Assembly (NCBI GenBank): GCA_965644495.1 | Contig: CBFFSA010000001.1 | Location: forward strand, 1,488,001 to 1,552,000 | DNA: 64,000 nucleotides | Reading direction: 5' to 3' | Origin: Perkinsela sp. CCAP 1560/9 | Lineage: Eukaryota; Protista; Euglenozoa: Kinetoplastea | In this document: piece after piece, positions 3,815-64,000 of the stretch | How positions within the stretch are numbered: the stretch's first letter is position 1 | How the letters are laid out: every line of letters begins with the position of its first letter | The notes under the pieces: model-generated | Told to the model about the DNA's origin: nothing | Databases searched by the model: none | The model's input: only the letters and a program-made list of their open reading frames with translations | Program-made: the position numbers and the translations under genes

Positions 3815-3914
3815 ACTTAGTGAGGAGTCGAGATAGACGTTGTCCAGAACCCTGGTTGCTTTGCCAAGATTCCCTGCGCGAGCTGCCTTTAGAGCGTTCC
3901 GGATTTAGAGCGTT

Positions 3915-5568
3915 CCCGGATGCGTCCAATGTACAGGGCTTAATGCCACAGTGAAGCACAATCGGCTGGTTAAGTATATCTTCGATTTGGCGCAAAAGGC
4001 CGGTATACAATGTGAGAAAGAACCGCGATCTTTTTCGACTTGGCAATGCGGAATTTGCAAGAATAAAGTGTTTCCAAGCAACAAAATGATTCATGACAAA
4101 ACATGTGCCGGACGTCAGCTGTTTCGCTCAGGGCCTGATTTGGTGATATATATAAACGTCGTATGCCCGGGATGCTGTGGTCCAGAAACATCTTCTAGTA
4201 TTATTCCACATATCGCAGGATGCTCGAGATGCTCAGGTATGAACTGCACTCGTAAACACTCTCACATCGTGCGCTATCTAGCTGACTTGTGCGCGAAGGC
4301 AGGACTTCCGTGTGTTATCGAACCGCGAATTCACTCCTCATTTTATTGTACAAAGTGTAAATGCTCTATTTCTGCGGAGGTTTCTGACCAACATCCATGT
4401 AAGGCGCGCAGGATTCGATCTGGCCCCGACCTCGCTATCATGTGGCCCCATATGGGAGAAGTCCTCTATGATTTCACAGTGGTTCACACTTGCTGCAACA
4501 GTTACAAGAAACAAACAAGCAACTACCTACTGCAGCAAGCCCAGGAAAGGAAGTTCAAGAAATATGTGACAGAGAAAGGTGTGGACAGTGAGGCATTTCG
4601 TTGCATCGCCGCCTCAGATTGTGGTGTGTTGCACAACGACACAAAACAACTATTAAAGGCGTTGGCTCAGCGCGCGAATCGAAAATATGAAAACGTGCGT
4701 GAGGCTTTTCAGCTGGAACTTGAAAAGCTATCGGCTTACACGGTAGTGTCTCAACTCCGAGATTACATCACCGATGAAAAGTGGATTGGGAGTTTACGAC
4801 TCTAAAAGAGTTCACTACCACACGTATATCTCCGTACAAATAAGTATTGATTAGTTGCCTTCGAATATATTAGGTCCTTTCGAATATATTAGATACTGCT
4901 ACTTCTGCATTGATTCTTCATCACGTTTGACAACAATTGGCGCGTATACAATAATTGATCCGGGAACTGTTCTTTTTTACTTTGAGGCTTTGCTGGTTTC
5001 GAGGGGACAAGTGTCATCAAAAAATGATATATTGGTCAACCGGGGAAATATTTTATGATCTAACTGTGGTGCACGAGCTATCGAACTCCAATCAAGCGAA
5101 ATCTTGTTCCCAGCTTCTTACAGATGCAATCAAGCGGAAACGGGATACATATGTGACATCCGGAAAAATTCCCGACTTCGCATTTCAGTGCATCCCAGTG
5201 CTGTCCTGCGGCTCTCTTCATCAAAATACGAGATCTCTGTTGCATGTCCTATCCGACGCGGCACTCTTAAATCGTCGAGCAACTGAAATGGAGTTCAAGC
5301 TCCTACTTCAGGAACTGAATGGGACGGAAGTGTACGCCCAGTTGCGGAACCACTTATCCCCGCAAGGCAGCAGCAGGTACAGCATTTGAGCCAAATGTAT
5401 CAACATAGTTTCGTTTCTCAATGCCTATTAATGTATTATTATATACATAATATCTATAGCGAATTCCCACTCAAAAATATATAAAAAGAATAAAAATTGC
5501 AAAGGAAGGCAATATTATCACTGCTTGCACTGATTCTTGAGGAGTTTCGTAAAAAAAAAAAAAAAAAA
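3915..5568 (+). mobile_element. 5'-truncated subfamily II CRE copy (RLE region, 3'UTR, polyA 5551-5568), itself split by the 4152-5024 insertion
   Basis: KHNRLV..CEKEPR..SGPDLVIY (to 4151) continues as WSTGEIFYDLTVVHEL (from 5033) to the stop at 5389; polyA tail follows. Confidence 0.85.
4152..5024 (+). mobile_element. 5'-truncated subfamily I CRE copy with an 8-bp TSD; creates the chimeric 284-aa ORF 3951-4805 (copy 11741-12595)
   Basis: TSD tgatatat at 4144-4151 and 5025-5032, preceded by a short A-run. The protein closely matches the C-terminus of the 1161-aa ORF. Confidence 0.85.
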
Positions 5569-5574
5569 TCTAAA

Positions 5575-6270
5575 CTTTAACGATAAGATACATCTTTAAC
5601 GATAAAGATACAGTTTCTGTACCTTGTTGAATTATTTCCCCTTTTCTTCCATACACCATCTTCCAGACCATGGGAGGGCACCCCCCTCAAATACACTCCT
5701 TTTTGTCGGCATCCCCCTTCCCCGTCTCGTCCCATCACCCCCCTGCGCCGCATCCCCCCACCTCACCCTCCCTCCGCAGTGCGCTTGCCCCCCCGGTTGT
5801 GTTTCTCTCTCGCGTCCCCCACCCCCGTGTCAGCAGCCAAAAGTATACAATACTTGCTCACGGGGTGGGGGCAGAGTTCCTGGCAGATGGGCCCGTGCTT
5901 CGCCTCCTCTCGCCCCTGCGTCAGTCGCCCCGTGTCTCTCTCCGCGCTCTTCTCCCTCGGCGTGACGACGTCTTTGTGTTTCGTGGCCTCCACGTCTCCC
6001 ACCCTCGTACGGCAACCAAAAGTATTTATTACTGCTAACGGGGTGGGAGCGGAGGTGCAGGACCATATGGGCCTGGGTGCATGCGGATCGGTGAGTGGGG
6101 TAGGGAGTGAGGGAAGGGAAGTACGAGAGGGCTAAGAGGAGTAGGTGTGGAAAGTATGGGGAGTAAGGGAAAGTGAAGGGCCGTAAGTGTGGAAATTGTG
6201 GAAAAGTTGGACTCCATACATAAAAAGTTAGACTCAATACTATTCCCCCCAATTATTTGCAAAAAAAAAA
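5575..6270 (+). mobile_element. SL-headed, polyA-tailed non-autonomous retroposon (SINE-like), ~0.7 kb; copy at 13367-14061
   Basis: Starts with a partial plus a 38-nt SL (5575-5629) and ends CCCCCCAATTATTTGC-An. TSD (aa)tctaaa at 5567-5574 and 6271-6278. No conserved ORF (frameshift between the two copies). Confidence 0.8.
5592..5629 (+). ncRNA. Spliced-leader (mini-exon)-like sequence, 38 nt; copy at 13384-13421
   Basis: ATCTTTAACGATAAAGATACAGTTTCTGTACCTTGTTG; the core ACAGTTTCTGTAC and terminal TTG match the kinetoplastid SL. Confidence 0.85.
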
Positions 6271-6332
6271 AATCTAAAGGAACGAATCTTATTATTTTCA
6301 TTAATAGATCTTGTGAAGGTAATCGAATTATT

Positions 6333-6720
6333 GATTGAGCGCCGGTCAATTTCGAGTTCCTTCTGTTCTTCTTCGGTCAGATTGTCCACTGCTTCGGGTT
6401 TCGCGTTCTTTGGTAAGTGTGGTACACTTTCGCGTCGACGTATAGCTTTCCGGACTGTGAGTAGCGAATCGCGGGGCGCGTTCAGAAATTTATGCCAGAC
6501 TGCTTCCTTCTCCGATGTCAGTTCTAGTCTTGGATAGTCTTTGATGATGGAACGAAAAATGGTAACTACGTGCACAGAGAAAGCCGAGTCAATTTGTGCG
6601 AAAGGCGGTAGCGGTTCTAAATCAACTCCGTGGTCAACTTCTTCAGCATCACCTGCTGCACTCTCCATGGTTTGAGGTTCGTACCTAGGGACTCGGTGGA
6701 GTTTCATGGCGTCAATGCTG
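6333..6720 (-). pseudogene. N-terminal part of the 1517-3904 subfamily I element
   Basis: DLEPLPPFAQIDSAFSVHVV...EIDRRSI joins RNALKAARAG at 3904 (compare QIDKRSIRNALNTARAG in the 1161-aa ORF); 4-bp gatt at both junctions. Confidence 0.85.
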
Positions 6721-6752
6721 AGGATCCTGATCAATGATGCTTGGATCCTGAT

Positions 6753-7330
6753 CCTTGTTGTTGTTGTTGTTTTTTTTTTTTTTAGTCTTACTGATGGGAA
6801 TGTTCACCCGCAGCCGGGCGAAAGAAACGGGATTAGCTCCCGTTGTCCAACCGCTACCGCCCACACGCCGAAAGAAAAAGCCGGAGGAACAACCATCGGA
6901 AACCCGTGCCCCCCCACCACCGTCGTCGCCGCCGCCGCCACAACAACAACAGCCACCCCATTCAGCACCACGAAAGACACCCTCACAACGAACTTCTCCT
7001 CCGCCGCTGCCGCGATTGCCTTCTCTGCTGCGCACGCCGTCCGACACATCGCCGCGGGCGCAGATAACAACTCCGCCACTGCCTCGCCCACTCTCCCCCA
7101 ATTTAGCTCACGAGGCATACGCGGCGGTAAATTCGTCACGATCGTCCTCAGTTCCTCGGCCGCACGAGCCGATCCACACAGCGACGCGGGCTCAGCCGTC
7201 CCGTCCACCATTGCCGCGTCCACTCTCTCCCCCTCCCGCCCACAATTCTATCGCGCCAGCGAATCCGCATCCATCGCCCGAAAGCCAAAAAAGTAGCAGT
7301 CTGAAAATTAAAATCACATCAACTCGAGAT
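6753..7330 (+). pseudogene. 5' end of a CRE-like element: SL remnant, T-rich leader and Pro-rich N-terminus MGMFTRSRAKETG
   Basis: ccttgttg at 6753-6760, ATG at 6794; homologous to the N-termini at 46.7, 51.2 and 55.6 kb. Confidence 0.7.
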
Positions 7331-7366
7331 CTAATCATACCACCGGTTACAAACCCTGCTTCTCAC

Positions 7367-8052
7367 GCATTGGGATTGCACATCCGAGCCTCCCCTCCAA
7401 TTTACAGTGTCCAGGGTGCCATGCATTACTTACCCCCCGTACAGCGCTCACGCACGTGTCCGGGTGCGTCAAATGTTCAGGCAATAACGCAACGGCAAAG
7501 CACAACAGGATGGTTCGGAATATTTATGAATTATGCATAAAATCAGGTCTGCCCTGTGAGCTGGAACCCAGACAGTTCTCCACCTATACTTGCGCAAAAT
7601 GTGGAGCAAGCGTGGATGGCGACGGCAAATCCCATCACCTAAGAACCTGCGGATCCGGATCTTTTTATCATTCGGGCCCAGATATCGTGATTCATTGGGC
7701 AAGCGGAGATGTATACTACGATTTCACCATCGTCCACGAGCTATCGCAATCAAATGTTGGACGTAGCACCGCTCAGCTTTTCCGTGATGCCATAAAACGC
7801 AAAGTCTCCAAATACGTGGCGTCTAAGCTTATTCCTAATGAGCAATTCCAATGTGTACCAATGCTCTCCGGCGGTGCAATGCACAGCAACACCAAAGCGC
7901 TTATCACAACCCTGGCTGATGCATGTGGACTCGAACGGGACTTCGTAGTACAGGATTTCACCCTTCGACTACAGGAACTTAACGGTTCAGTGGTGATGTC
8001 CCAACTCCGCAAATACATAGCCACAACTCAAGTGGACAATACGGCTTTTTAG
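7367..8052 (+). pseudogene. Subfamily II CRE 3' fragment (knuckles + RLE); copies at 15158-15843, 36818-37091 + 41257-41400, and 46733-47008
   Basis: CPGC...CVKC..KH..CELEPR..GPDIVIHW..YYDFTIVHEL; near-identical nucleotide copies. Confidence 0.88.
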
Positions 8053-9306
8053 GCACGTGCGAGTTTTTCGGTAGGCGTTGACTATTGATATAAGAGTTGA
8101 AGTTTAGACGACTGAAAGTCTATGAAAAGAAACTGAGATGAATGTTCACAGACAGTGACACTAAACAAAATTTTATAAAGAACACACTTTTTATAAAGAA
8201 CACACTTTTTATAAAGGACCAGAACCAATCCAAGGCAAAACGATTCATGTTGCAATATGTTGCATGTCCCGCTATAACCGAAGTGACGGTTTGTAAAAAA
8301 AAAACTTCTCACTAAAGGAATTCAACTCAATAACGAAAAATGCATCTGGTTTGAAGGGAAAAGCGACGCCCCCATTCCATCAACACTCAAAGAAGAAGGT
8401 GTGCGTACAGAGAGCGAAGTCATTAAAGTACTGGGTGCATTCGTTGGGGAGGAACAGCGCATAGGATCCGAATTAATCCGAACGCTGGAAAAACACCATA
8501 CGATATTCAGACGTCTTAAAAAGATGGGTGCCAACAACGCGTCCCTGCTTTTGCTAGGTTTGTGTATTTGTAAGTTATGATTTTATCTTTGTAAACTTAT
8601 GAGGCAATAGTTTTAAGAATCCTTCCGCTTTTTGATAACGTTTCGGATTTGTTTTTGTCTTACGGATCAAAGTAGCAGCCACGAGCATGATGCAGACCGA
8701 AACGAGCTTTTTTTTTACAAAAAAAAATTGCGTTTTCATTCATCGAACAGGACATCCTGTTCGATGAATGATTCATCGAACGGGTCGTACTGCAATCCAT
8801 TCATCGAACAGGATGTCCTGTTCGATGAATATTCATCGAACGGACAGTGCGTTCGATGAATATTCATCGAGTGCCCCCCCTCCCCGGACTGCGCTACTAG
8901 ACCGCACGAGCAATTACACCACACCGTTTGCACCACACAAATCAATGCACCAACGCCACTAGACGCACCCGAAGAATTTCTGAACGATGAACCTAAATAT
9001 CATTTCGCTCTAAAGATTGTGCAACGACGCATCAACGTCGTGTACATAACCTTCCCATATGTTGTAGCCCAAAACTAATAATTCAACCTGCCTTAAGTTA
9101 CAGTATTTATTGGGGGGTGTATAAACGAGGGGTGCATAAACAGGGGATGGGGGAATATGCTTGGGAAAGGACGTGCAATACCCCCATCCACAAAAATTAG
9201 AACTTCAGTTATAGTATCCTAAATTTCATATCGTAAACTCATATTTCGCATTTCTGAAACACCAACAAAAAAGATTATCACGCAAACTTGTGTCCTATCG
9301 TCCTTT

Positions 9307-11604
9307 TCAAGCTTTCATAGAACCGAGCCATGAAGCTCGCGGTAGGAGGTCACGGAGCTGTGAGACAATTGTATAAGCGTTGAGTTTTTCAATCTCAAGC
9401 TGAAATGCCTCACGAACTTCAGGAACGTTAAGGTTCGCTCTCTTAGCGAGGGAGGCTATGAGATTCCGTGTGTGTTCGTGCAAAGAACCACTTTCGGTCA
9501 TTGCAATGCACTTAAAGTAATCTTCTTCGATCCCGCCGGATTCAAAGTACTTTTTCCTTTTCCTCTCAATCGCATTTTGCAACAGCTGTGTTTCAGTCAT
9601 CTTCCGATAGCTTAAGCTTCCGGTGTGAACTACGGTGATGTCATACAGTACTTCGCCCATGTGTGGCCACATAATACCGAGGTCGGGGCCAGAGCGTATT
9701 CTTCGGGCACGGCAAGGGTGCTTCTCAATCGATTCTGGAGAAATGTGCGCTTTGCATTTTGTGCAGTAAAAGGAAGCATGCATGCGCGGTTCAATTACAG
9801 AGGGGAGGCCCGCTTTAGAGCACAGATCTGCTAGGAACCGTACAAGAGATGAATGCTTTCTTGTTGCGTTCATTCCTGCGCATTTTGTGCATCCGATTAT
9901 ATGTTGGAAGATTTCGTCCGATCTCATCTCAGCAGCACAACCCGGGCACTCGGCTCTTTCCGGCATCGAAGGAAGCTTGATTCCCAACCTGGTCATAATG
10001 GTATATCGGAAAAGGTAGGGATTCACATATCCGCTAGTGGATTGTAGGTGGCGAAATGACGTCGTGGTTCGCTTCAGAATGGAGTCCAATCGTGGGTCTT
10101 TGCGTAGGTCTGTTGCTAGATCTTTTTGTTCTTTTTTTATGGCTTTGGATGCATGTACTCGAGCTGTTTGCTGCATGGGTTTCGTGTCTCTGTTTTGATC
10201 TTTCGACATGCGAATACCTACCGGAGCTTTAGGGGTAATTAGTTGCTCATCAATAGATTTTCGTGCGGTGTCAAAATAGTATCGCTGCTTCAGAGTAGAA
10301 GGAGTTAGCCCAAGGCCACCCAAGTGTTGCGGTAGTGACGCTAGTTGAATGGAAGTGTCATCTGCGAAGAACCAATATTTTACAATATGAGCAATTTCTG
10401 TGTCAAATCTTTGTGCCATATCCAGGGATTCTGCCGGTCGGTGAACTCGAAGGTGATAATCGTTTCGCGGGAGTGCACATCGTTGCAGCATGGCGAGGGA
10501 GATGTTGCTAGGACCCATTTTTCGTAGCCTGCGGAATAAACATTGATGTTTCTCAAGTTTTCGGACGAGAAGAGCACTTATCTCTGCACGTTGCCCAATG
10601 TAGGCGCCGAGAATTTTGATAGTTTTGTCACACTTGGATACCCCTAAAGAACTGAGAGCCAATGATTGTTCGTTGTTTTGCTTAGTAGCTTCGTGATCAA
10701 ACCATTCTGATTTCGAGAAGTTGATATTGAGGCCAATGTCGGATGATAATTCACGCAGCTGCAGGAAGGCTGCTTCTAGGGAAAGACGGTTTTTCGACGA
10801 CATCGTCACATCATCCATATAGGCGCGGATTTTAACCTCGGGGAATAACTCGGCGAGTTCCACCAACGCTCCTTGTAGTAGTGCACAAAAGTAAAGAGAG
10901 GAAAGCGCAGAGCCTTGCCGTACCCCGGACGTGCTCTTTATCGTAGTGTGGAGGCGGTTGTTCGCAAAGAAAAGCAAGTCCGAGGGGTCGCCGTATTCGC
11001 AGTAGAACATCCGCATAAATGGTTTGAAAGCGCTGTTTTGCTGCAGTGCCCGTGCAATGGCCGCTCTTTGTGGAGTGTTATACGCGTTCGAGTAGTCTAC
11101 TGTCAGGATAGTGTGTCCGGAATCGCGGTCCTTGAGGAGTTCGTGAACAATGCTTTCGCACGCGTTTTTCTGTAGGACTCCACGTTGGATGGGATAGAAG
11201 AAGCCTTTTAGAGATGCCTCTTGGCGTTGCAACAGAATGGAACCGCATATTTTTAGCACTGTATCACCCATCGCGATTGGTCGTATGCCGTTTTGTGGTT
11301 TCGCAAGGGCAATAATTCTACATCGAGTTAATCTGTTGCGTACCGATGCGCATACATCACCATTGATGACGTCCCTGAGCATGTGACATAGCGCGGTACA
11401 GGATTCGTTGTCGTCGGCTAATAGGCGGAGGATATTCTCACCGAGGCCTGTCGGCCCCGGGGCCGCTCCATGGGCAAGCTTGGTTATAGCCATCCGGACT
11501 TCTTCCAACTCAACCACACCGGCTGGCGGATATTCCGAAGTAGGTGCAGGGGGCGGGTCGCCAGGAGGGTGTAATTCTTTCAGCCGTCGTACCTTGTCGT
11601 CCAA
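9307..11604 (-). CDS. Duplicate of the 765-aa subfamily I RT-RLE ORF
   Basis: Identical except for D->H and Q->K substitutions. Confidence 0.93.
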   Translation of the reverse strand: MDDKVRRLKELHPPGDPPPAPTSEYPPAGVVELEEVRMAITKLAHGAAPGPTGLGENILRLLADDNESCTALCHMLRDVINGDVCASVRNRLTRCRIIALAKPQNGIRPIAMGDTVLKICGSILLQRQEASLKGFFYPIQRGVLQKNACESIVHELLKDRDSGHTILTVDYSNAYNTPQRAAIARALQQNSAFKPFMRMFYCEYGDPSDLLFFANNRLHTTIKSTSGVRQGSALSSLYFCALLQGALVELAELFPEVKIRAYMDDVTMSSKNRLSLEAAFLQLRELSSDIGLNINFSKSEWFDHEATKQNNEQSLALSSLGVSKCDKTIKILGAYIGQRAEISALLVRKLEKHQCLFRRLRKMGPSNISLAMLQRCALPRNDYHLRVHRPAESLDMAQRFDTEIAHIVKYWFFADDTSIQLASLPQHLGGLGLTPSTLKQRYYFDTARKSIDEQLITPKAPVGIRMSKDQNRDTKPMQQTARVHASKAIKKEQKDLATDLRKDPRLDSILKRTTTSFRHLQSTSGYVNPYLFRYTIMTRLGIKLPSMPERAECPGCAAEMRSDEIFQHIIGCTKCAGMNATRKHSSLVRFLADLCSKAGLPSVIEPRMHASFYCTKCKAHISPESIEKHPCRARRIRSGPDLGIMWPHMGEVLYDITVVHTGSLSYRKMTETQLLQNAIERKRKKYFESGGIEEDYFKCIAMTESGSLHEHTRNLIASLAKRANLNVPEVREAFQLEIEKLNAYTIVSQLRDLLPRASWLGSMKA

Positions 11605-14600
11605 ACTTAGTGAGGAGTCGAGATAGACGTTGTCCAGAACCCTGGTTGCTTTGCCAAGATTCCCTGCGCGAGCTGCCTTTAGAGCGTTCCGGATTTAGAG
11701 CGTTCCCGGATGCGTCCAATGTACAGGGCTTAATGCCACAGTGAAGCACAATCGGCTGGTTAAGTATATCTTCGATTTGGCGCAAAAGGCCGGTATACAA
11801 TGTGAGAAAGAACCGCGATCTTTTTCGACTTGGCAATGCGGAATTTGCAAGAATAAAGTGTTTCCAAGCAACAAAATGATTCATGACAAAACATGTGCCG
11901 GACGTCAGCTGTTTCGCTCAGGGCCTGATTTGGTGATATATATAAACGTCGTATGCCCGGGATGCTGTGGTCCAGAAACATCTTCTAGTATTATTCCACA
12001 TATCGCAGGATGCTCGAGATGCTCAGGTATGAACTGCACTCGTAAACACTCTCACATCGTGCGCTATCTAGCTGACTTGTGCGCGAAGGCAGGACTTCCG
12101 TGTGTTATCGAACCGCGAATTCACTCCTCATTTTATTGTACAAAGTGTAAATGCTCTATTTCTGCGGAGGTTTCTGACCAACATCCATGTAAGGCGCGCA
12201 GGATTCGATCTGGCCCCGACCTCGCTATCATGTGGCCCCATATGGGAGAAGTCCTCTATGATTTCACAGTGGTTCACACTTGCTGCAACAGTTACAAGAA
12301 ACAAACAAGCAACTACCTACTGCAGCAAGCCCAGGAAAGGAAGTTCAAGAAATATGTGACAGAGAAAGGTGTGGACAGTGAGGCATTTCGTTGCATCGCC
12401 GCCTCAGATTGTGGTGTGTTGCACAACGACACAAAACAACTATTAAAGGCGTTGGCTCAGCGCGCGAATCGAAAATATGAAAACGTGCGTGAGGCTTTTC
12501 AGCTGGAACTTGAAAAGCTATCGGCTTACACGGTAGTGTCTCAACTCCGAGATTACATCACCGATGAAAAGTGGATTGGGAGTTTACGACTCTAAAAGAG
12601 TTCACTACCACACGTATATCTCCGTACAAATAAGTATTGATTAGTTGCCTTCGAATATATTAGGTCCTTTCGAATATATTAGATACTGCTACTTCTGCAT
12701 TGATTCTTCATCACGTTTGACAACAATTGGCGCGTATACAATAATTGATCCGGGAACTGTTCTTTTTTACTTTGAGGCTTTGCTGGTTTCGAGGGGACAA
12801 GTGTCATCAAAAAATGATATATTGGTCAACCGGGGAAATATTTTATGATCTAACTGTGGTGCACGAGCTATCGAACTCCAATCAAGCGAAATCTTGTTCC
12901 CAGCTTCTTACAGATGCAATCAAGCGGAAACGGGATACATATGTGACATCCGGAAAAATTCCCGACTTCGCATTTCAGTGCATCCCAGTGCTGTCCTGCG
13001 GCTCTCTTCATCAAAATACGAGATCTCTGTTGCATGTCCTATCCGACGCGGCACTCTTAAATCGTCGAGCAACTGAAATGGAGTTCAAGCTCCTACTTCA
13101 GGAACTGAATGGGACGGAAGTGTACGCCCAGTTGCGGAACCACTTATCCCCGCAAGGCAGCAGCAGGTACAGCATTTGAGCCAAATGTATCAACATAGTT
13201 TCGTTTCTCAATGCCTATTAATGTATTATTATATACATAATATCTATAGCGAATTCCCACTCAAAAATATATAAAAAGAATAAAAATTGCAAAGGAAGGC
13301 AATATTATCACTGCTTGCACTGATTCTTGAGGAGTTTCGTAAAAAAAAAAAAAAAAAAAATCTAAACTTTAACGATAAGATACATCTTTAACGATAAAGA
13401 TACAGTTTCTGTACCTTGTTGAATTATTTCCCCTTTTCTTCCATACACCATCTTCCAGACCATGGGAGGGCACCCCCCTCAAATACACTCCTTTTTGTCG
13501 GCATCCCCCTTCCCCGTCTCGTCCCATCACCCCCCTGCGCCGCATCCCCCCACCTCACCCTCCCTCCGCAGTGCGCTTGCCCCCCTGTTGTGTTTCTCTC
13601 TCGCGTCCCCCACCCCCGTGTCAGCAGCCAAAAGTATACAATACTTGCTCACGGGGTGGGGGCAGAGTTCCTGGCAGATGGGCCCGTGCTTCGCCTCCTC
13701 TCGCCCCTGCGTCAGTCGCCCCGTGTCTCTCTCCGCGCTCTTCTCCCTCGGCGTGACGACGTCTTTGTGTTTCGTGGCCTCCACGTCTCCCACCCTCGTA
13801 CGGCAACCAAAAGTATTTATTACTGCTAACGGGGTGGGAGCGGAGGTGCAGGACCATATGGGCCTGGGTGCATGCGGATCGGTGAGTGGGGTAGGGAGTG
13901 AGGGAAGGGAAGTACGAGAGGGCTAAGAGGAGTAGGTGTGGAAAGTATGGGGAGTAAGGGAAAGTGAAGGGCCGTAAGTGTGGAAATTGTGGAAAAGTTG
14001 GACTCCATACATAAAAAGTTAGACTCAATACTATTCCCCCCAATTATTTGCAAAAAAAAAAAATCTAAAGGAACGAATCTTATTATTTTCATTAATAGAT
14101 CTTGTGAAGGTAATCGAATTATTGATTGAGCGCCGGTCAATTTCGAGTTCCTTCTGTTCTTCTTCGGTCAGATTGTCCACTGCTTCGGGTTTCGCGTTCT
14201 TTGGTAAGTGTGGTACACTTTCGCGTCGACGTATAGCTTTCCGGACTGTGAGTAGCGAATCGCGGGGCGCGTTCAGAAATTTATGCCAGACTGCTTCCTT
14301 CTCCGATGTCAGTTCTAGTCTTGGATAGTCTTTGATGATGGAACGAAAAATGGTAACTACGTGCACAGAGAAAGCCGAGTCAATTTGTGCGAAAGGCGGT
14401 AGCGGTTCTAAATCAACTCCGTGGTCAACTTCTTCAGCATCACCTGCTGCACTCTCCATGGTTTGAGGTTCGTACCTAGGGACTCGGTGGAGTTTCATGG
14501 CGTCAATGCTGAGGATCCTGATCAATGATGCTTGGATCCTGATCCTTGTTGTTGTTGTTGTTTTTTTTTTTTTTAGTCTTACTGATGGGAATGTTCACCC

Positions 14601-16134
14601 GCAGCCGGGCGAAAGAAACGGGATTAGCTCCCGTTGTCCAACCGCTACCGCCCACACGCCGAAAGAAAAAGCCGGAGGAACAACCATCGGAAACCCGTGC
14701 CCCCCCACCACCGTCGTCGCCGCCGCCGCCACAACAACAACAGCCACCCCATTCAGCACCACGAAAGACACCCTCACAACGAACTTCTCCTCCGCCGCTG
14801 CCGCGATTGCCTTCTCTGCTGCGCACGCCGTCCGACACATCGCCGCGGGCGCAGATAACAACTCCGCCACTGCCTCGCCCACTCTCCCCCAATTTAGCTC
14901 ACGAGGCATACGCGGCGGTAAATTCGTCACGATCGTCCTCAGTTCCTCGGCCGCACGAGCCGATCCACACAGCGACGCGGGCTCAGCCGTCCCGTCCACC
15001 ATTGCCGCGTCCACTCTCTCCCCCTCCCGCCCACAATTCTATCGCGCCAGCGAATCCGCATCCATCGCCCGAAAGCCAAAAAAGTAGCAGTCTGAAAATT
15101 AAAATCACATCAACTCGAGATCTAATCATACCACCGGTTACAAACCCTGCTTCTCACGCATTGGGATTGCACATCCGAGCCTCCCCTCCAATTTACAGTG
15201 TCCAGGGTGCCATGCATTACTTACCCCCCGTACAGCGCTCACGCACGTGTCCGGGTGCGTCAAATGTTCAGGCAATAACGCAACGGCAAAGCACAACAGG
15301 ATGGTTCGGAATATTTATGAATTATGCATAAAATCAGGTCTGCCCTGTGAGCTGGAACCCAGACAGTTCTCCACCTATACTTGCGCAAAATGTGGAGCAA
15401 GCGTGGATGGCGACGGCAAATCCCATCACCTAAGAACCTGCGGATCCGGATCTTTTTATCATTCGGGCCCAGATATCGTGATTCATTGGGCAAGCGGAGA
15501 TGTATACTACGATTTCACCATCGTCCACGAGCTATCGCAATCAAATGTTGGACGTAGCACCGCTCAGCTTTTCCGTGATGCCATAAAACGCAAAGTCTCC
15601 AAATACGTGGCGTCTAAGCTTATTCCTAATGAGCAATTCCAATGTGTACCAATGCTCTCCGGCGGTGCAATGCACAGCAACACCAAAGCGCTTATCACAA
15701 CCCTGGCTGATGCATGTGGACTCGAACGGGACTTCGTAGTACAGGATTTCACCCTTCGACTACAGGAACTTAACGGTTCAGTGGTGATGTCCCAACTCCG
15801 CAAATACATAGCCACAACTCAAGTGGACAATACGGCTTTTTAGGCACGTGCGAGTTTTTCGGTAGGCGTTGACTATTGATATAAGAGTTGAAGTTTAGAC
15901 GACTGAAAGTCTATGAAAAGAAACTGAGATGAATGTTCACAGACAGTGACACTAAACAAAATTTTATAAAGAACACACTTTTTATAAAGAACACACTTTT
16001 TATAAAGAACACACTTTTTATAAAGGACCAGAACCAATCCAAGGCAAAACGATTCATGTTGCAATATGTTGCATGTCCCGCTATAACCGAAGTGACGGTT
16101 TGTAAAAAAAAAACTTCTCACTAAAGGAATTCAA

Positions 16135-17556
16135 CTCAATAACGAAAAATGCATCTGGTTTGAAGGGAAAAGCGACGCCCCCATTCCATCAACACTCAAA
16201 GAAGAAGGTGTGCGTACAGAGAGCGAAGTCATTAAAGTACTGGGTGCATTCGTTGGGGAGGAACAGCGCATAGGATCCGAATTAATCCGAACGCTGGAAA
16301 AACACCATACGATATTCAGACGTCTTAAAAAGATGGGTGCCAACAACGCGTCCCTGCTTTTGCTATCGCGCAGCGTAAACGTTCGGCACCGTTATCACGT
16401 ACGGGTACATAAACCAGAGGCCTCACTTGAGCTAGCGCAAAAATTTGACTACGAGATCAAGAATGTCGTCACATCGTGGTTGGGACCTCTGAGTCCAGAG
16501 CAAGAAATGATAGCAAGACTACCTTTAAAGAAAGGTGGATTGGGTATTCCAGCAACAGAACCCTTGCGGAACGCTGCGTACACTTCATCGCGACATGCCG
16601 TTTTTGAGCATCAAAAATCCTTTTCAGCTCGGATGGCACAGCGCATGGAACCGCCAGCACCTGCAGGGACGTTGGAGGAATCACATAAGACACCTGAGGA
16701 CGAGGTGGTGACGGAGACCAAAAGAGCCACAGAAATCCAGACAAATCTTCTCAAAAACAAGGAGTGGGCTCCGACGATTAAAGCTTGCAGCAAGAAAGGG
16801 AGCTATGAATGGCTTATCGGGAATCGCAAAATCATTCCTTCGCACATCTACACGCTAAACATCATGTCACGACTAAAAATAAGCCACCCACAACTGCCAA
16901 ACTCGTTGCTATGCCCGGGATGCAAAAAGCTGCTAAGCTCCTCGGAAGCGCTAACCCACATACCTGGATGCGTCAAATGTGCAGGACACAATGTAACTAC
17001 GAAGCATCATGCCCTTGTTCGCTACCTTTACGAGCTATGCCTCCGAGCTGGCTTGCCGTGTGAACGTGAACCTCGTCAGTTCAGTTACTATGAGTGCTCT
17101 GCGTGCGCAGCCACGATCCACCCTGAAAACAAAACGGAACATGCCAGGACATGTGTTGGAAGTACTCTGCGTCGCACGGGCCCCGACCTCGCAATTCAAT
17201 GGGCTTCAGGAGAGAAATACTACGACCTCACAGTAGTTCACGAACTGGCTCCCTCGAATATCAAACACAATACGACATTCCTCATGAACGAAGCGATAAA
17301 GCGCAAGCGTGTACGCTATGTTGACAGTGGCATGATAAACAAGGAATGCTTTGAATGTATCCCTGTTCTGTCCTGCGGTTCCATGCACAACGCCACTCGA
17401 AATCTCCTGTGGGCTATTGCGGACCGTTGCGGGCTAGAGAGACACAGCGTAATGGAAACATTTACGCTACTCCACCAGGAACAGGCAGGAAGTATCCTCC
17501 ACGCTCAACTCCGCCAGTTTCTAGCTCACGACCAATACACTGAGACAAGTTTTTAA
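16135..17556 (+). pseudogene. Subfamily II CRE 3' half (RT thumb to RLE), ORF 16210-17556
   Basis: KCIWF..KVLGAFVG..LPLKKGGLGI..CPGC..GPDLAIQW..YYDLTV..KRKRVRY. Confidence 0.9.
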
Positions 17557-46718: not shown

Positions 46719-48191
46719 AAAAAATGGCACAACTTTTCCGTGATGCCATAAAACGCAAAGTCTCCAAATACGTGGCGTCTAAGCTTATTCCTAATGAGCA
46801 ATTCCAATGTGTACCAATGCTCTCCGGCGGTGCAATGCACAGCAACACCAAAGCGCTTATCACAACCCTGGCTGATGCATGTGGACTCGAACGGGACTTC
46901 GTAGTACAGGATTTCACCCTTCGACTACAGGAACTTAACGGTTCAGTGGTGATGTCCCAACTCCGCAAATACATAGCCACAACTCAAGTGGACAATACGG
47001 CTTTTTAGGCACGTGCGAGTTTTTCGGTAGGCGTTGACTATTGATATAAGAGTTGAAGTTTAGACGACTGAAAGTCTATGAAAAGAAACTGAGATGAATG
47101 TTCACAGACAGTGACACTACACAAAATTTTATAAAGAACACACTTTTTTCCAACTCCAGCACGTTTTTTTTATTGATTTTACAGTTCCGTGAGATATATT
47201 TAGAAGCGCTTGGTTATCAAAGCTCTACGCTAGTAGGCATTCTTCTTTTGGCCTCGCGTTTTTCGATCTTTCCCATAGCATATCCGTCGCAACTGGAAAG
47301 CTAAAAGCCGGATCAATTGACCCTGCCCAACGTTGAACAATGGCCTTGTTGCACGAATTGGGGTCTGGCAAGGAGTTTGCTTCTGAACTTGCAAGCGTTT
47401 CGTGCAGTGTATCACTCCATTGTCTGCTCGACCCCTTCTATATACTCGCTGAGCGTCTTTTGTTCGTCGCGCTTGCGTTTCCTGGTTCGTAACGGGTCGG
47501 AAAAATTTGCGTTCAGCGGGTCGACAAGATATTTCGGCAGACGGGGCTTGGGCCGCGGCGTATCCGTCAGAGAAACGTTGGGAAGCATGTGAACCATCCC
47601 GCGCGAAAAATCTTTTTGACACCACGTGGGGTTTTCTGTCGTCCCCATTTCCTGTAATACCTCCCGTTCGATCGTCATATACGGATAAGGAAGGTTTTCC
47701 CCAAGCGGAACTGGTCGTGACGCGGGGGTGAAGCACGGGGTCGGGAGTTCGGGAATCATGACACAATGTGTTATTGGCGCCGATCGAGGGGTGTTCTTTG
47801 CAGAATGACTGTGTGGGGAAGGCGTGTGGGGGATTGGAGGGAGGGAATCGATCACGGGATTTATGACGTCTTCTATAGCGGGGTTTATGACGTCTTCTAC
47901 GGTTTTGCAGGGCGGAAAAATCGGACGACTGAGCCGCGACTCCTCCCCGTGGGAGTCCGATTCCATGTGAATCGGGGTAGGAGTAAACTGTAGACGCCGA
48001 GGCGGACTCGACTCCAAGGCGGACGCCAGACAACTCAACGGCGTCTGGATCTCCGTGTGGGCAACTGGATTTTGGGGAGTCGGTGCTGGGGAGAACGCTA
48101 GACACCGCGGCAGACTTTCTAGTGCGGGCATTGGTGTCTTCGTTGCGCTCTGTTCGGTATTGTTGATGCTTAATTGGGGCGGTTCCCGAGT

Positions 48192-48638
48192 GTTTCTGTA
48201 CCTTGTTGTACCTTGTTGTTTTTTTTCGTTAAACTTTACAAAAACTTTATGGTTGTGCTAACGCGCTCCAAACTTGCAATGCAGCACTCGACCAACGAAT
48301 CCAATATCGACCCACAGAGCGACTGGAACGAAATACACTACCCTACACCAATTCTACCTCAAGTGTCGAAGAAATGGAAAGGAAAAGTAGGTAGTCTAAA
48401 GGGCAAAGGTCTAAACGAGATTATGGACAAAAGCAGCGACATTCACGACAACTCCACAAATTCAGACGAAATGAACATCGAACCGCGAGAATGCATCACA
48501 CGACAAGAATCACGACAAAGCAAACCACGGAAAATCAAAGTTATCATCGGAGACTCACGACCTTCGGATCAAACAAGCTCAGATATCTTACAAAAAACGA
48601 TGGATGGGTATTCAATGTTTACCCGTACTGGCAGCTGA
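48192..48638 (+). pseudogene. SL-headed 5' fragment MVVLTRSKLA...
   Basis: gtttctgtaccttgttg plus a repeated taccttgttg (48192-48218), T-rich leader, ATG at 48249. Confidence 0.65.
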
Positions 48639-48877
48639 GACGTCGCGCTGCAAAGTATGAACTAAGTGGTATATTATTATTATTCCTTGATGATGATGAT
48701 GAATTAGGCAATATATCTCCGAGGAGATGTTACCTCCCTAGACCAAGCCTCCCCTTATCGCTTGCTAGGAGCTGTGCCACGCAGCACGCAAGTCAAATCC
48801 GAAGATTTGACCAGATCGAGCGCGAGCAGCCAGCTTATCTTTTTTTATCCCCTTTTATATACTACAAGAAAATATTC

Positions 48878-50665
48878 GGGTACGTCTCTACTTCGTTGAA
48901 TATTCAACGAACCGCCGGCGGTTCGTTGAACGATTCAACGAAGCGATGGCTCTTCGTTGAATATTCAACGAACGAGATTTTAATTTTTTTTCGAGCGAGC
49001 GTTCGATTTTTTTAACATTTTAAATTGTCTCAACGGAGCAACAAAGGTAGCGCATGGTACTAGAAACTCTTTTTCGGCAAGTCGATCTCATTTTTCCTGC
49101 GGAAACCACCCAACCAACCAGAATCCTGCGGAAGTGGCAGACATAGGTTCTCAGTGCGCGACCCGCGCGCTGGAGCGCGCGGGTCGCCAAAAAATATAAT
49201 TATGTCCCAGGGCTACGCTCACAGTTGGGCCTTGCTCGCAGACGGGGGCTTTTGCCTCCAGAAGTGGGCTTCGCTCACAGTTGGGCCTTGCCTCTCGACA
49301 ATCCTGCGGAAGTGGCAGACATAGGTCCTCAGTGCGCGACCCGCGCGCTGGAGCCCACGGGTCGCCAAAAAATATAATTATGTCCCAGGGCTACGCTCAC
49401 AGTTGGGCCTTGCTCGCAGACGGGGGCTTTTGCCTCCAGAAGTGGGCTTCGCTCAACGTTGGGCCTTGCCTCTCGACAATCCTGCGGAAGTGGCAGACAT
49501 AGGTCCTCAGTGCGCGACCCGCGCGCTGGAGCGCACGGGTCGCCAAAAAATATAATTATGTCCCAGGGCTACGCTCACAGTTGGGCCTTGCTCGCAGACG
49601 GGGGCTTTTGCCTCCAGAAGTGGGCTTCGCTCACAGTTGGGCCTTGCTCGCAGACGGGGGTTTTGCGATGAAATTCTACTACGATAAAAATTCTGAAAAG
49701 GATGCATTTGGGGATTTAATGCTTTTGTTTAATGTCACTGTCTGTGAACATTCATCTCAGTTTCTTTTCATAAACTTTCAGTCGTCTAAACTTCAACTCT
49801 TATATCAATAGTCATTTCTTTCCTAAAAAAATCTCGAAGGCATTTCTCCTGTGAAATCCTATGAGCTCTCTACAGCTCACAGGGCAGACCTGATTTTATG
49901 CATAATTCATTTTTTTTGTTGAAGCTTACGCGTCTTTGTAAGCTTATGTATTAAATATATAATTTTACTGAAGTATTAATCTGTTTGACTCAAAAACCAT
50001 AATTTTCTGTTCCATTCGACGCTAAGTATTTGCGGAGTTGCGAGTATACAGCAGCTCCGTTGAGGTCCTGTAATAGAAGTTTAAAGTCGGCCTCGACGGT
50101 TTTTCTATCTACTGTAGGACCGAGCCCCTTTTCCTTTTGTTATTGCTATTCCATATCTTTGCTTTACGTATTCGAGTTTGGAAAAAAAAACAACAAAGGG
50201 GTGAATTAAACAAACGTTTGGTATTCGGACAGGCGCTAGCTGGATCGGTAATATTAATATTCGTTGCATTAATCAGCTGCTACTTGTTTATTGTTGGAGT
50301 TCTCCCAGCCATTCAGTTGGTGTCATGTACTTTCTCAGTTGATTAGCTACAGTGTAGGCGTTCATCTTTTCAATCTCTAGCTGAAACGCTTCCTTGACTT
50401 CATTGACATTTCTTTCTGACCGTTTCGCTAAGCACTCCAACAATCGCCTGGTATTTTGATGGAGTTGTCCGAACTCTGTAACCCCTAGGCAACTAAAAGG
50501 TTTTGCCTCAAGAAGTGGGCTTCGCTGGCAGAATCCCAGAAAAGTTCAGTGAAAAAAAATAAAAAATCGCTTCGTTGAATCGTTCAACGAACCGACGGCG
50601 CTTCGTTGAATGTTCAACGAACCGACGGCGCTTCGTTGAATATTCAACGAAGTAGAGACATAGCC
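48878..50665. mobile_element. TIR DNA transposon variant, 8-bp TSD, with retroelement cargo fragments at ~49990-50100 and 50288-50495 (minus strand)
   Basis: Termini gggtacgtctctacttcgttgaatattcaacgaa...ttcgttgaatattcaacgaagtagagacatagcc; TSD aaatattc at 48870-48877 and 50666-50673. Confidence 0.92.
49122..49647 (+). repeat. About 3 tandem copies of a 178-bp unit internal to the TIR element
   Basis: aatcctgcggaagtggcagacatagg at 49122, 49300 and 49478. Confidence 0.95.
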
Positions 50666-50731
50666 AAATATTCTTTATGAAAAAACACTTCTTTTGAAGT
50701 GAAAAACACAACACACTCCAAAGATTATGCT

Positions 50732-50930
50732 GAATGACACCCACCCTAGTTTCTTAGTACCTTGTTATATCCGGTACCGGGCGGTGTCATTCTCACGCTG
50801 CGATGTCTGGGTGACCGTTACCCTAGTTATTTTGTGCCTTGTTTTGTTGGCACCGGGTAGTGTCATCCGCGGGACCTTGATCGTACCCACCCTAGGTATG
50901 TAGCGTCTTGTTGTGCGACGCCGGGTGAGT
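50732..50930. other. Three copies of an unclassified structured motif (CCC-TAG-N7-5bp stem-TTG loop-stem-C-GGG)
   Basis: Stems gtacc/ggtac, gtgcc/ggcac and gcgtc/gacgc with fixed spacing. Confidence 0.8.
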
Positions 50931-50961
50931 TAGCTAGGGAAGCTGGGGTCGCTACGCCCCA

Positions 50962-51197
50962 TCATTCGACAAAAGTCGAATGCCCTGACGCGGAAGATGG
51001 TGCAGCAGACGGCGCGGCGGATGGCGGTGCAGCAGGTTGCGCCGGGGTCCGCGGAGGTGGTGGCTCCTGTGGGGGTTTCTTCTTCCGGCGTGTGGGGGGA
51101 AGCGTCTGGATAACAGGGGCTACCCCCGTATCCTTCGCCTTGGCACGCGTCAGCATGCCCATTTAATAAAATTTAAAAATAATTCAACAAGGTACAG
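50962..51197 (-). pseudogene. SL-headed CRE-like 5' fragment MGMLTRAKAKDTG
   Basis: ctgtaccttgttg on the minus strand at 51185-51197; ATG at 51162. Confidence 0.75.
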
Positions 51198-52513: not shown

Positions 52514-54378
52514 TCTTTCTGCGCATTGGAATTGTTGAACGAGACGAACTCCTCTTAGCGGCCAGCAAATTGGCAACGGGTGCTTCCCCCGGACCTACAG
52601 ATTTCAGCGAATCGATGTTGCGACTTCTCGCCGACGATGAAGAATGCAGCATTTGCTTATGCCACATGTTCCGCGACGTGATCAATGGCGACATTCCAAA
52701 CTCAGTGCGTGATCGACTCACAAGATGCAGATTAGAAGCTTTGCCCAAACAAATAAATAAACTGCGCCCGATCGCTATAGGAGAGACCATCCTTAAAGTG
52801 TGTGGCATCATTCTTTTGCAACGACATGAAGACGCGCTTAAAAAGCACTTTCAAACCTTCCAACGAGGCATACTATAAAAGAATGCGTGTGAGCAAATTG
52901 TGCATGAACTGATAGAAGAATACGAGGCAGACCACAAGATCGTCACAGTGGATTACACTAACGCATTCAACACACCAAACAGAATCGCCATTGCAGAAAC
53001 TCTTCAAAAGCATGATGTTTTCAGACCATTTATGCGCCTCTTTTTCCTAGAGTACTCCGAGCCATCTGATCTTCTTTTCTTTGCTGACAACACACTCTAT
53101 TCAACAATCAAAAGCACATCTGGGGTACGACAAGGTTCAGCGCTCTCATCTCTCTACTTTTGTAGCTTAATACATCCCATCCTAGCTGAAGTAGCCGATC
53201 TTTTTCCTGAAGTCACGATCCGAGCATATATGGACGACATCACGCTTTCATCTCGAAACACTTTATCCCTAGAAGCCGCTTTCCTCCATCTTCAAGAACT
53301 TTCTAAAGACTTATCACTTGATGTCAACTGCAATAAAACAGAGTGGTTTCAGAAAGGAGCAAAAAACTGTCCATTGGCATTGCAGAAAGCTGGTCTATCG
53401 TCACCGGAGAAATCTGTCAAGATCCTAGGCGCCTACATAGGGGAGAATGAGGACGTTAGTGAAAAGCTCGTACGACAGTCAGTAAAGCATGTATGCCTTT
53501 TTTGACGTTTGCAAATCATGGGCCCAAGCAATCTTTCGTTAGCAATGTTGCAACGATGCACGATTCCACGACAGGATTACTTTTTGCGCGTCCACAAACC
53601 AGCAGCTACACTGAAAATTGCGGAATGCTTCGATGCTGAAATATCAAGAATTATCTCACACTGGTTTCTCGCCACAGGTGACTCACTCCGCCTCGCAACT
53701 CTACCGCAAAAAATGGGAGGTCTTGGTCTCACTCAGTCCACCTTAAAGCAACGGTACTTTTTTGAAGCAGCCAGACGATCTATTGATGAGCATAAAATAT
53801 CCACTAAAGCTCCGGTAGGTCAACAAGCTGTTGAGAAAGTTAGTGGCGTTACTTTGAATCCGATGAAAAGAAAAACTAAGGCCTCTAAAGCAATTCGCGA
53901 AGAGCAAACAAAAGTGCTGTCAGAAATCAAAGCAAACAAGCGATTAAGTGAAGTCATTAGCAGAACAAAGGACTCGAATTCACACTTGGTCTCCACTAAT
54001 GATTACATCGGGTAGGGGGGACCTTCGATGAGTACTCATCGAAAGTCTACAACTTTCCGTGAGTCTCATCGAGAGTCTACAACTTTCGATGAGTACTCAT
54101 CGAAGCGTTTTTGAGCGACCCTAATAGAGATTTTCGAGGTTTTTTTATTACTCACCGAAGCGTTTGTGGCAAACAAACTGAAGCGTTTGTATAAAACAAA
54201 TTCACAATCCTTCGGAAGGGGTAGACACAGGTTCCCAGTGCGCTACCCGCGTGCTGGAGCGCGCGGGGCGCCAAAAGATATTATTATGTCCCATGGTCAA
54301 AAGAGAATCCGAACTCCTAATCGATAATAGAAGCTAAGTCAGACTGCATAATTTACAAAAAGAAAACATATGATCTAC

Positions 54379-54900
54379 AGATACAGTTTCTGTACCTTGT
54401 TGGTACATTTTCCCTTTAGTTCATCTTTTCTTTCCCCGGCAACGGGCATAATCTTACTGTTTTATATGCCCGTTGCCGGCCGGCACTAAGACCGAAACTG
54501 TCCCTCTTTCTCGGCGAAGTAGGGGACGCGCTTCCACCCCATCACCCCTTCCCGGCTCACTCCTTGAGTGGGTTTTCTTCCCTCCCCGGCTTTCTTCCCT
54601 TCGCGCCCTTTTCTTCCCGGGGAGCCATGCGCCATGGTGGCCTCCCTTGAGGACCACTGGGCGTGGCTCTGCCTCGTCTTATCGCGAGGCAGCGGTCGGT
54701 TGCAGTGCGCCCCTCCGGCTGCGTAAAGAGGTGGTGAGTTGCCTGGACCACCTCTACCGACTGGGACCGAGTCGGTTGCAGTGCGCCCCTCCGGCTGCGT
54801 AAAGAGAGGGCGAGTTGCCTGGACCCCCTCTACCGACAGAGTCCGAGCTAAACCCCCTTGGTGCGACATCCGTCAATACGGATTGTGCCGATGATATCGG
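54379..54900 (+). mobile_element. Second SL-headed, structured non-coding element (3' boundary uncertain)
   Basis: 24-nt SL at 54379-54402; 15-bp perfect hairpin at 54436-54479; twin 67-nt repeats at 54695-54761 and 54771-54837. Confidence 0.55.
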
Positions 54901-63144: not shown

Positions 63145-63510
63145 TCGACTCTAGTACCACATACATATATATATATATATATCAGTCCGCAAGTGGTCGC
63201 AGCAATGCTCTACTTGTTATTATTATTCTCATTTTATCCTAACACAAAGCTCGCTGCGACAACACTACCCACGCGACTCCATCCACTTTTCCTTCTCGTA
63301 CCGCCTCTCTTCAACCCTGATTTCAACTCCTGATTGAAAATATGCTTTGCGAATTCCTCAAATTAAATTAAATATAATTTCATTAAAATTTTTACCTATT
63401 GAAAATTACAATGCATTAGGAACAATCATACACATGCCCATTTGACTAATCAAATAAATTGATTGATCTCACAGTAGTCAACGAACTTGAATTTGAGATT
63501 TTGATTCACT

Positions 63511-63792
63511 TTTTATAAAGAACACACTTTTTATAAAGAACACACTTTTATAAAGAACACACTTTTTATAAAGTAAGATCAACCTTTTTGTAAGATCAAC
63601 CTTTTTGTATGAGTACTCATCGAAGGTGTTTTTGACCATTGCTAGATGTGACTTTACTTTTATTAAGACCTTTACTTTTATTAAGACCTTTACTTTTATT
63701 AAGACCTTTACTTTTATTAAGACCTTTACTTTTATTAAGACCTTTACTTTTATTAGGACCTTTACTTTTATTAAGACCTTTACTTTTATTAA
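63511..63792 (+). repeat. Two related 18-bp minisatellites (ttttataaagaacacact; ttttattaagacctttac, ~7 copies)
   Basis: Direct inspection; the first type also occurs at ~8170, ~15960 and ~47127, and a variant of the second at ~17663. Confidence 0.9.
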
Positions 63793-63860
63793 TGGAGTAA
63801 TCTTCTAGCACGAGAGCGGTTGGCTCAATCATATAAGAAGACACCGGACTTTAGACAGAC

Positions 63861-63977
63861 ATTACCCTAGTTATTTGATGCCTTGTTTTATTGGCATTGG
63901 GCAAATCCATCTATAGGAAAGGTGTAATGCCCTAGTTCTTTAGCATCTTGCTATTTTGATGCCGGGTACCTCCTTTC
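63861..63977. other. Two more copies of the CCCTAG structured motif
   Basis: Stems atgcc/ggcat and gcatc/gatgc, same geometry as 50732-50930. Confidence 0.8.
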
Positions 63978-64000
63978 GTAAGCTTTCTAGTTCGCTTACA

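Follow-up and report, generated by a model that had tools for sequence, protein, structure and literature searches.

Introduction

Structured 3′ RNA handles explain how LINEs choose their own RNA and how SINEs hijack them, and to our knowledge few cases have been worked out, all of them in animals. Short conserved blocks of unclear function also form the central domains of SINE superfamilies (CORE-, V- and Deu-SINEs and the families of molluscs in PMC4758252), lying between the head and the LINE-derived tail across unrelated SINEs. These domains are conserved mainly in sequence, whereas the module described in the present study keeps its shape while its helices vary, and is carried by autonomous LINEs as well.

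That LINE proteins recognise 3′ stem-loops shared with SINEs is a known principle (PMC1636434, PMC4176376). Among trypanosomatids, Pr77 is found at the 5′ end of L1Tc/ingi, NARTc/RIME and SIDER elements, where it forms an HDV-like double pseudoknot, cleaves and promotes transcription (PMC4035085, PMC5509151). Perkinsela has L1Tc/ingi-like, trans-spliced LINEs, and fragments of its spliced leader (SL) are linked with retrotransposons (PMC5601477 and its supplement).

Here we analyse a 64,000-nt stretch of the genome of Perkinsela sp. CCAP 1560/9 (positions 1,488,001 to 1,552,000 of contig CBFFSA010000001.1, assembly GCA_965644495.1; hereafter the window), which holds one triple and one double array of a ~65-nt unit. 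An initial annotation of the window had suspected that these arrays are part of a mobile element, and both are: the triple array sits in a short SINE-like element (S1) and the double array in the 3′ UTR of a LINE (LINE C).

Among described systems, the 3′ stem-loop shared by stringent LINEs and their SINEs is the closest in kind. As in eel UnaL2/UnaSINE1 and zebrafish ZfL2 (PMC1636434, PMC4176376), the sense strand of the LINE 3′ UTR contains a hairpin interrupted by an internal loop or bulge, and a non-autonomous partner shares it together with the LINE 3′ end, followed by simple-repeat tails. Unlike the stringent stem-loop, which adjoins the tail, the last module lies 140 nt (LINE C) to 255 nt (S1 and the related LINE C′) before it. 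In the elements read, the module is present singly or in tandem, up to three times, and the stems of the copies differ. Nor is it family-specific, being present in both B-type and C-type lineages and missing from close relatives. Pr77, or the 79-nt hallmark, is similar in being a ~77-nt structured unit common to kinetoplastid LINEs and their short derivatives, sometimes as a tandem pair (SIDER2) (PMC4035085, PMC5509151). The present module differs from Pr77 in its 3′ UTR location, its simple bulged hairpin and its lack of any match to HDV-like models.

Module copies in the window and genome

A search of the plus strand of the window with the pattern CCCTAG-N12-TTGYT returned matches at 50744, 50821, 50890, 63865 and 63930; with one mismatch allowed there were seven matches, against 1.85 expected from shuffles. 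Every unit, read on this strand, consists of CCCTAG, 7 nt, a perfect 5-bp stem, a 9–11-nt loop opening TTGYT, one pyrimidine and GGG, which is the layout given in the initial annotation, and by direct reading the outer stems differ among the five. A covariance model (R1) trained on 26 copies from elsewhere in the genome recovered exactly the same five units in the window, with scores of 54–75 bits and all on the minus strand, in agreement with the number and positions originally proposed.

Numbered as in that annotation, and all on the minus strand, these are copy 1 at 50730–50795 (74.8 bits, E = 6e-21; fold z-score −5.1, the minimum-energy fold being the consensus), copy 2 at 50807–50871 (72.4 bits; z −2.9) and copy 3 at 50876–50939 (53.9 bits; z −3.1), which on the RNA strand are respectively the third and last, the middle and the first module of S1, and copy 4 at 63851–63915 (70.8 bits; z −3.5) and copy 5 at 63916–63980 (60.3 bits; z −3.0), which are the second and first modules following the coding region of the minus-strand LINE C, within its 3′ UTR. 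Copy 2 is common to the LINE family C′, and the inner stem of copy 1 reads GGUAC/GUACC on the RNA strand.

Across the whole 21-Mb assembly the exact pattern had 294 matches compared with nine for a backwards control, and at least 150 places scored with R1. About 300 copies of the module are thus present in the genome. Rfam was searched at gathering score with the entire window and, for the locus, at E-values up to 10, and returned no relevant known family.

Fold, covariation and strand

Analysis of a larger set of copies confirmed the unit as an RNA hairpin of ~65 nt whose shape is kept while its letters change. Its parts are an outer helix of ~14 bp with a one-base bulge, closing in an invariant CCC/GGG; a 9-nt bulge on the 3′ side that is rich in invariant letters (AAANAACUA); an inner helix of 5–6 bp whose letters are free to vary; and an A-rich loop of 9–11 nt terminating in AACAA. 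RNAalifold independently predicted the CCC/GGG helix and the inner stem, and the fuller structure (outer helix, bulge, inner helix and loop) was specified by us and scored for pairing on sets of 26 and 52 distinct copies, in which 84.6% and 85.2% of cells, respectively, were paired. Sliding the partners reduced this value to only 33.7–42.6%, and none of 500 shuffles reached the observed covariation score. The earlier impression from five copies, that the inner stems all differ and yet pair, therefore reflects true covariation, which holds in all 52 distinct copies taken together.

Within this larger set pairing in the inner helix reaches 94.5%; four of its six pairs show changes on both sides, and three are split near-evenly between two different Watson-Crick pairs. 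Conservation is highest in the unpaired letters, namely the loop end (A-N-A-A-C-A-A) and the bulge (A-A-A-N-A-A-C-U-A, then GGGU). No covarying tertiary or pseudoknot contact was found, the mutual information among unpaired columns representing lineage effects only, and as modelled the overall fold is a single simple nested bulged hairpin with neither a pseudoknot nor a multi-helix junction.

The RNA strand is the reverse complement of the strand originally read, i.e. the minus strand of the window and the sense strand of the LINEs. Four independent lines place it there: the excess of G·U pairs, the fold z-scores, the orientation of coding regions and the polarity of the elements. Wobble pairs had been judged unable to identify the strand; with 52 distinct copies they do so, and in favour of the opposite strand, since G·U pairs outnumber A·C, the other-strand image of G·U, by 127:70 overall and by 68:21 in the core. 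On the minus strand the consensus shape is the minimum-energy structure of all five window copies (z −2.9 to −5.1), whereas on the plus strand two of the five fold no better than shuffles, the hairpin being formable there in some copies. When module coordinates were compared with coding-region ends, allowing ~600 nt downstream, 11 independent places had modules in sense orientation and none had them in antisense. Of the 11, seven are C-type and three B-type, and the last is a B-type unit on contig 33 that is tandemly amplified. A single antisense case was a pattern match that lacked R1 confirmation and was rejected. Finally, the elements themselves run along the minus strand, with a sharp common 5′ end (GTCAGGG), 5′-shortened copies, and 3′ simple-repeat tails that vary in length and unit. 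The initial description of a selected RNA or single-stranded DNA element is supported as to a selected structured element with true compensatory changes, and the G·U excess points to RNA of one strand. Among public sequencing runs, none recorded as RNA contained this stretch, and one presumed to be RNA had nothing aligned to it.

Retroelements carrying the module

A search for the elements associated with the module identified LINE 3′ UTRs and SINE-like elements. The triple array of the window belongs to the latter. Other genome copies connect position 48877 straight to 50666 with 97–99% identity, and the segments 48687–48877 and 50674–50989 are therefore regarded as one non-coding element of ~515 bp, S1, which on the RNA strand is composed of a ~65-nt head, modules 3, 2 and 1, a body of ~255 nt and a (TCATCA)n or (AAATCA)n tail. 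The head (50940–50989, minus strand) opens with GTCAGGG on the RNA strand, followed by a perfect 8-bp hairpin, and the copies are alike up to GTCAGGG and diverge beyond it. The part of the body next to the modules (50674–50729, minus strand), which extends up to an insert, is collinear with the uninterrupted copies L031–L035 at 97–99% identity. The 3′ part (48704–48877, minus strand), whose RNA-strand end reads ...TTGCCTAA, is common to LINE C′, and the same sequence follows the coding region of L036, a C′ copy. The simple-repeat tail (48687–48703, minus strand) is (TCATCA)n on the RNA strand and varies among copies in both length and unit. The 97–99% identity among S1 copies indicates that the element has moved recently.

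The insert that splits S1 (48878–50665, 1.8 kb, no strand assigned) is unrelated, is missing from all other S1 copies and lies outside the module system. It has terminal inverted repeat (TIR) arms of 61 nt that are 92% complementary and an 8-bp target duplication (AAATATTC), as well as 30/31-bp subterminal repeats and an internal array of three 178-bp units, and looks like a foldback or MITE-type DNA transposon.

From ~15 nt before module 2 through the tail, S1 consists of 3′ UTR sequence of LINE C′, the two having in common two modules, ~255 nt and the tail. On this basis S1 is SINE-like, comprising a head of its own, one module and a LINE 3′ end. The unit of head plus module 3 recurs in L009, L022, L029 and L071–L075, and a second SINE-like family, S2, also has this head-plus-module unit, followed there by a 3′ region of another kind.

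The double array belongs to LINE C, whose 3′ UTR occupies 63794–64000 on the minus strand up to the window end; from 63794 onwards it is homologous to three other copies. Its coding region (reverse transcriptase and C-terminal domain; open frames, Pfam RVT_1 1.8e-29) lies at 64112–66376 on the minus strand, in extended coordinates beyond the window, and the two modules follow it after ~130 nt. They are collinear, at 99% identity, in the copies L038, L039 and L040, which run on for a further 85 nt and then reach an (ACTA)n tail; a bulged hairpin whose loop is UUCG is predicted ahead of this tail. The window copy adjoins an 18-bp tandem array at 63794, without the usual last 85 nt and (ACTA)n tail. 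The reverse transcriptase of LINE C finds its nearest solved structures in LINE-1 ORF2 proteins. LINE C′ (copies L036, L062, L067 and L069) is ~40% identical to LINE C over the C-terminal domain. It contains an open frame of 844 residues as well as a reverse transcriptase, and in all four copies module 2 of S1 follows the coding region. Database relatives of C′, at 26–29% identity, have an apurinic-type endonuclease (APE) domain. With a reverse transcriptase nearest LINE-1 ORF2 and an APE domain in the relatives of C′, the features of LINE C and C′ fit the L1Tc/ingi-like trans-spliced LINEs of Perkinsela (PMC5601477).

Several details of the 3′ regions were also recorded. In one LINE C′ copy (L036:4080-4082, G000:C7) the open frame goes on for ~40 residues after homology has ended, and its stop codon is the invariant UAG within CUAGGG of the first module; this may be a coincidence, the stops of LINE C and the B-type LINEs being well upstream. 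Bulged hairpins that carry a YUCG tetraloop and are candidates for family-specific structures immediately precede the tails of LINE C (L038:8188-8217) and of S1 and C′ (window 48704–48745, minus strand), with z-scores of −0.7 and −1.5, i.e. weak thermodynamic support. The interval 63507–63793, which separates the 3′ UTR of a plus-strand LINE B from that of the minus-strand LINE C, is filled by three tandem arrays that differ from one another and have units of 17–18 bp; among them, on the minus strand, is a GTCAAAAACA motif and then a palindromic hairpin, resembling the SINE-like 5′ head (GTCA, a few bases and a hairpin).

Distribution of the module

In several LINE lineages that have diverged from one another, the module is found in the sense 3′ UTR, 50–520 nt beyond the end of the coding region. 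These include LINE C, LINE C′, at least two B-type families (L007 and L021) and the contig-33 unit. The same loop and bulge occur in B-type and C-type LINEs, whose reverse transcriptases share ~22% identity, and across all module-bearing lineages the reverse transcriptases are only ~22–40% identical. Many copies stand without a coding region beside them, and the sequences that follow the modules are of at least 17 different kinds. In the elements read, short non-coding SINE-like ones stack up to three modules, and single modules are common.

Presence within lineages is patchy. LINE A of the window and LINE C″ of L034, which is 40% identical to C′, gave no module in their 3′ UTRs in an unfiltered R1 search, and the whole-window R1 search found none in LINE B of the window; module-less relatives overall show 40–57% identity. 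Comparison of R1 places with coding-region ends likewise showed no high-scoring module near most B-type ends. Beyond this genome, a 17-base pattern had 54 single matches in metagenome contigs, all attributed to chance and none of them confirmed by R1, though near relatives may be missing from these collections, and three LINEs of other organisms (26–29% identity, APE domain) had no module anywhere on their contigs.

Some modules are contained in long-period tandem arrays, with units of ~1.86 kb (G000:C33:73000-92200), 6.09 kb (C64:17343-35731), 2.5 kb (C27:93044-98206) and 2.3–2.5 kb (C20:75551-80422). The unit on contig 33 includes a 169-residue C-terminal LINE fragment located 520 nt before the module. 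A LINE-rich duplication of ~7.8 kb is also present in the window (1526–8600 and 9316–16400), in which all protein matches and two weak R1 hits repeat at an offset of 7790–7791.

Proposed function

We propose that the module is a cis-acting, probably protein-binding element of retrotransposon RNA, most likely a docking handle and not a ribozyme or an RNA gene array. Judged from sequence comparison, the best explanation, in which our confidence slightly exceeds our doubt, is that of a ~65-nt structured module of non-LTR retrotransposons acting as a putative protein docking site shared by LINEs and SINE-like elements. Such a site is usually marked by loops of invariant sequence that are held on a scaffold free to change its letters. 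As the module has this arrangement, its conserved single-stranded A-rich loop and bulge, set on a variable helical scaffold, would form the docking site for a protein, which could be either the LINE's own product or a common host factor. Binding may aid assembly of the RNA, its retention or its choice for reverse transcription, and non-autonomous elements may multiply the module to compete for the bound factor, their extra copies suggesting that this factor is limiting. Reverse transcription would more likely start at the separate family-specific hairpin beside the simple-repeat tail, and for this reason the module is seen as a possible accessory handle and not as the priming site.

The sharing of the module across lineages, combined with its absence from close relatives, is more readily reconciled with a common host factor, or with an accessory that can be exchanged, than with a handle for a specific reverse transcriptase. 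A LINE-specific handle is also disfavoured by the distance of 140–255 nt between module and tail, known stringent LINEs having theirs at the 3′ end. The identity of the factor therefore leans somewhat towards a common factor or exchangeable accessory.

The foremost alternative shares this host factor and dispenses with any role in template choice: the module would be a host-directed RNA element, bound by a cellular factor for stability, export, localisation or 3′-end formation of transcripts without an ordinary poly(A) tail, and would spread among retroelements since it is useful to any RNA. The near-invariance of loop and bulge in LINEs whose reverse transcriptases have diverged widely, the patchy presence within lineages and the internal position away from the 3′ terminus are all in keeping with this reading. 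However, the module has been seen so far in retroelement sequence only, and its stacking in non-autonomous elements suggests competition for a limiting, element-related factor, so that we regard a purely host-directed role as unlikely, though the most serious rival.

Whichever protein a retrotransposon docking site would bind, the module recurs ~300 times in a small protist genome, and natural compensatory mutants already exist. Template choice by an element's own protein or by a common host factor is testable here, as is the manner in which modules move between families. The module also provides a clean annotation marker for the very repeat-rich genomes of Perkinsela-like organisms.

Resemblance to the spliced leader

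The SL RNA gene of Perkinsela is present as a tandem pair on contig 1 (L044 and L045, at G000:C1:661317 and 661614), 297 bp apart, with a full 38-nt exon. The intron starts with GTATGAGAAGCT, which we take to be the same as in trypanosomes. The exon ends in ...CAGTTTCTGTACCTTGTTG (...GTACCTTGTTG), and the CTTGTT hexamer that had been noticed both at the stem-loop junction of the module and at the SL 3′ end is indeed common to the two. More extended similarity is significant only for one module subtype, GUACC (p 0.013 or lower). On the plus strand this subtype repeats SL positions 21–37 with 17 of 17 letters and one 2-nt gap, resembling the kinetoplastid SL RNA stem-loop I in its 5′ arm, GUACC, and in a loop that opens UUGUU like the end of the SL exon. 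Unlike stem-loop I, the module is antisense in LINE RNA and lacks the 5′ part of the SL, most copies have no splice donor, and the other subtypes are dissimilar.

Two related readings build on this resemblance. In the broader one, the module would be a transferable 'passport' RNA exchanged by unrelated LINE lineages and their parasites. It would have begun as an antisense copy of SL RNA stem-loop I, would act by way of the host's trans-splicing and would still dock retrotransposon RNA onto the SL or onto a protein whose normal target is this region. We consider it improbable; were it true, retrotransposition would be linked to trans-splicing in kinetoplastids. In the narrower one, which we likewise hold to be improbable, and if anything slightly more so, the LINE-sense module is an antisense copy of the 3′ part of the SL (the region of SL RNA stem-loop I) that pairs with SL RNA or with the trans-spliced 5′ end of the element. 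The LINE RNA of the GUACC subtype could pair with the SL, since its plus-strand form repeats SL positions 21–37; the predicted duplexes reach −17 to −25 kcal/mol (z −1.9 to −3.5), and trans-splicing of Perkinsela LINE RNA and the linkage of SL fragments with retrotransposons (PMC5601477) would provide a setting. Against this, the other module types have complementarity z-scores of about 0 and alignment p-values of ~0.03 or higher, mostly >0.05; the positions that would pair with the SL vary freely (columns 57 and 58), and the invariant A63 mismatches it. The match of the GUACC subtype itself is only suggestive after allowing for the number of types tested. SL pairing was accordingly rejected as a conserved feature of the whole module family, the excess complementarity being confined to this subtype, and the resemblance is possibly a trace of origin or a subtype-specific extra, not a conserved function.

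Ribozymes and RNA genes

The initial annotation had offered a protein-binding array, a processing signal or a new ribozyme, and of these protein binding is the best reading. A self-cleaving ribozyme or processing signal releasing ~65–75-nt units would account for the regular tandem spacing and the strongly conserved unpaired nucleotides. It is nevertheless very unlikely, given that the fold is one nested bulged hairpin with no pseudoknot, multi-helix junction or covarying tertiary pair, that no Rfam ribozyme matches even at E-values up to 10, that the boundaries of the elements fall outside the modules and that single modules are common. For the hammerhead, twister, pistol, hatchet and hairpin ribozymes, Rfam gave no match on the plus or the minus strand. 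It is equally unlikely that the units are small RNA genes of a snoRNA-like or tRNA-like kind, or that they act at the DNA level as a target site or single-stranded DNA hairpin. Tandem units of 65–77 nt resemble kinetoplastid snoRNA clusters, and some copies can form the hairpin on the other strand too, but no tRNA was found and Rfam gave no snoRNA match. The modules are part of ~300 retroelement copies and keep a constant orientation towards coding regions, the excess of G·U indicates RNA of one strand, and two of the five copies lack a significant plus-strand fold. In particular, ARAGORN found no tRNA genes in the window that could point to a tRNA or a tRNA-derived SINE head, and a kinetoplastid snoRNA cluster (C/D or H/ACA-like) was rejected on the absence of an Rfam match and the position of the units within retroelements.

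Spliced leader fragments in other repeats

Partial SL sequences head other repeats, at 54366–54404 and 48185–48218 of the window and in L042, L043, L046 and L047. The repeat at 54366 has SL letters of about positions 12 to 38 joined directly to non-SL sequence (GTACATTTT...), and at 48185 an SL-like end is found with GTACCTTGTT twice. Genome-wide, the pattern of the SL 3′ end followed by GGT has 290 matches.
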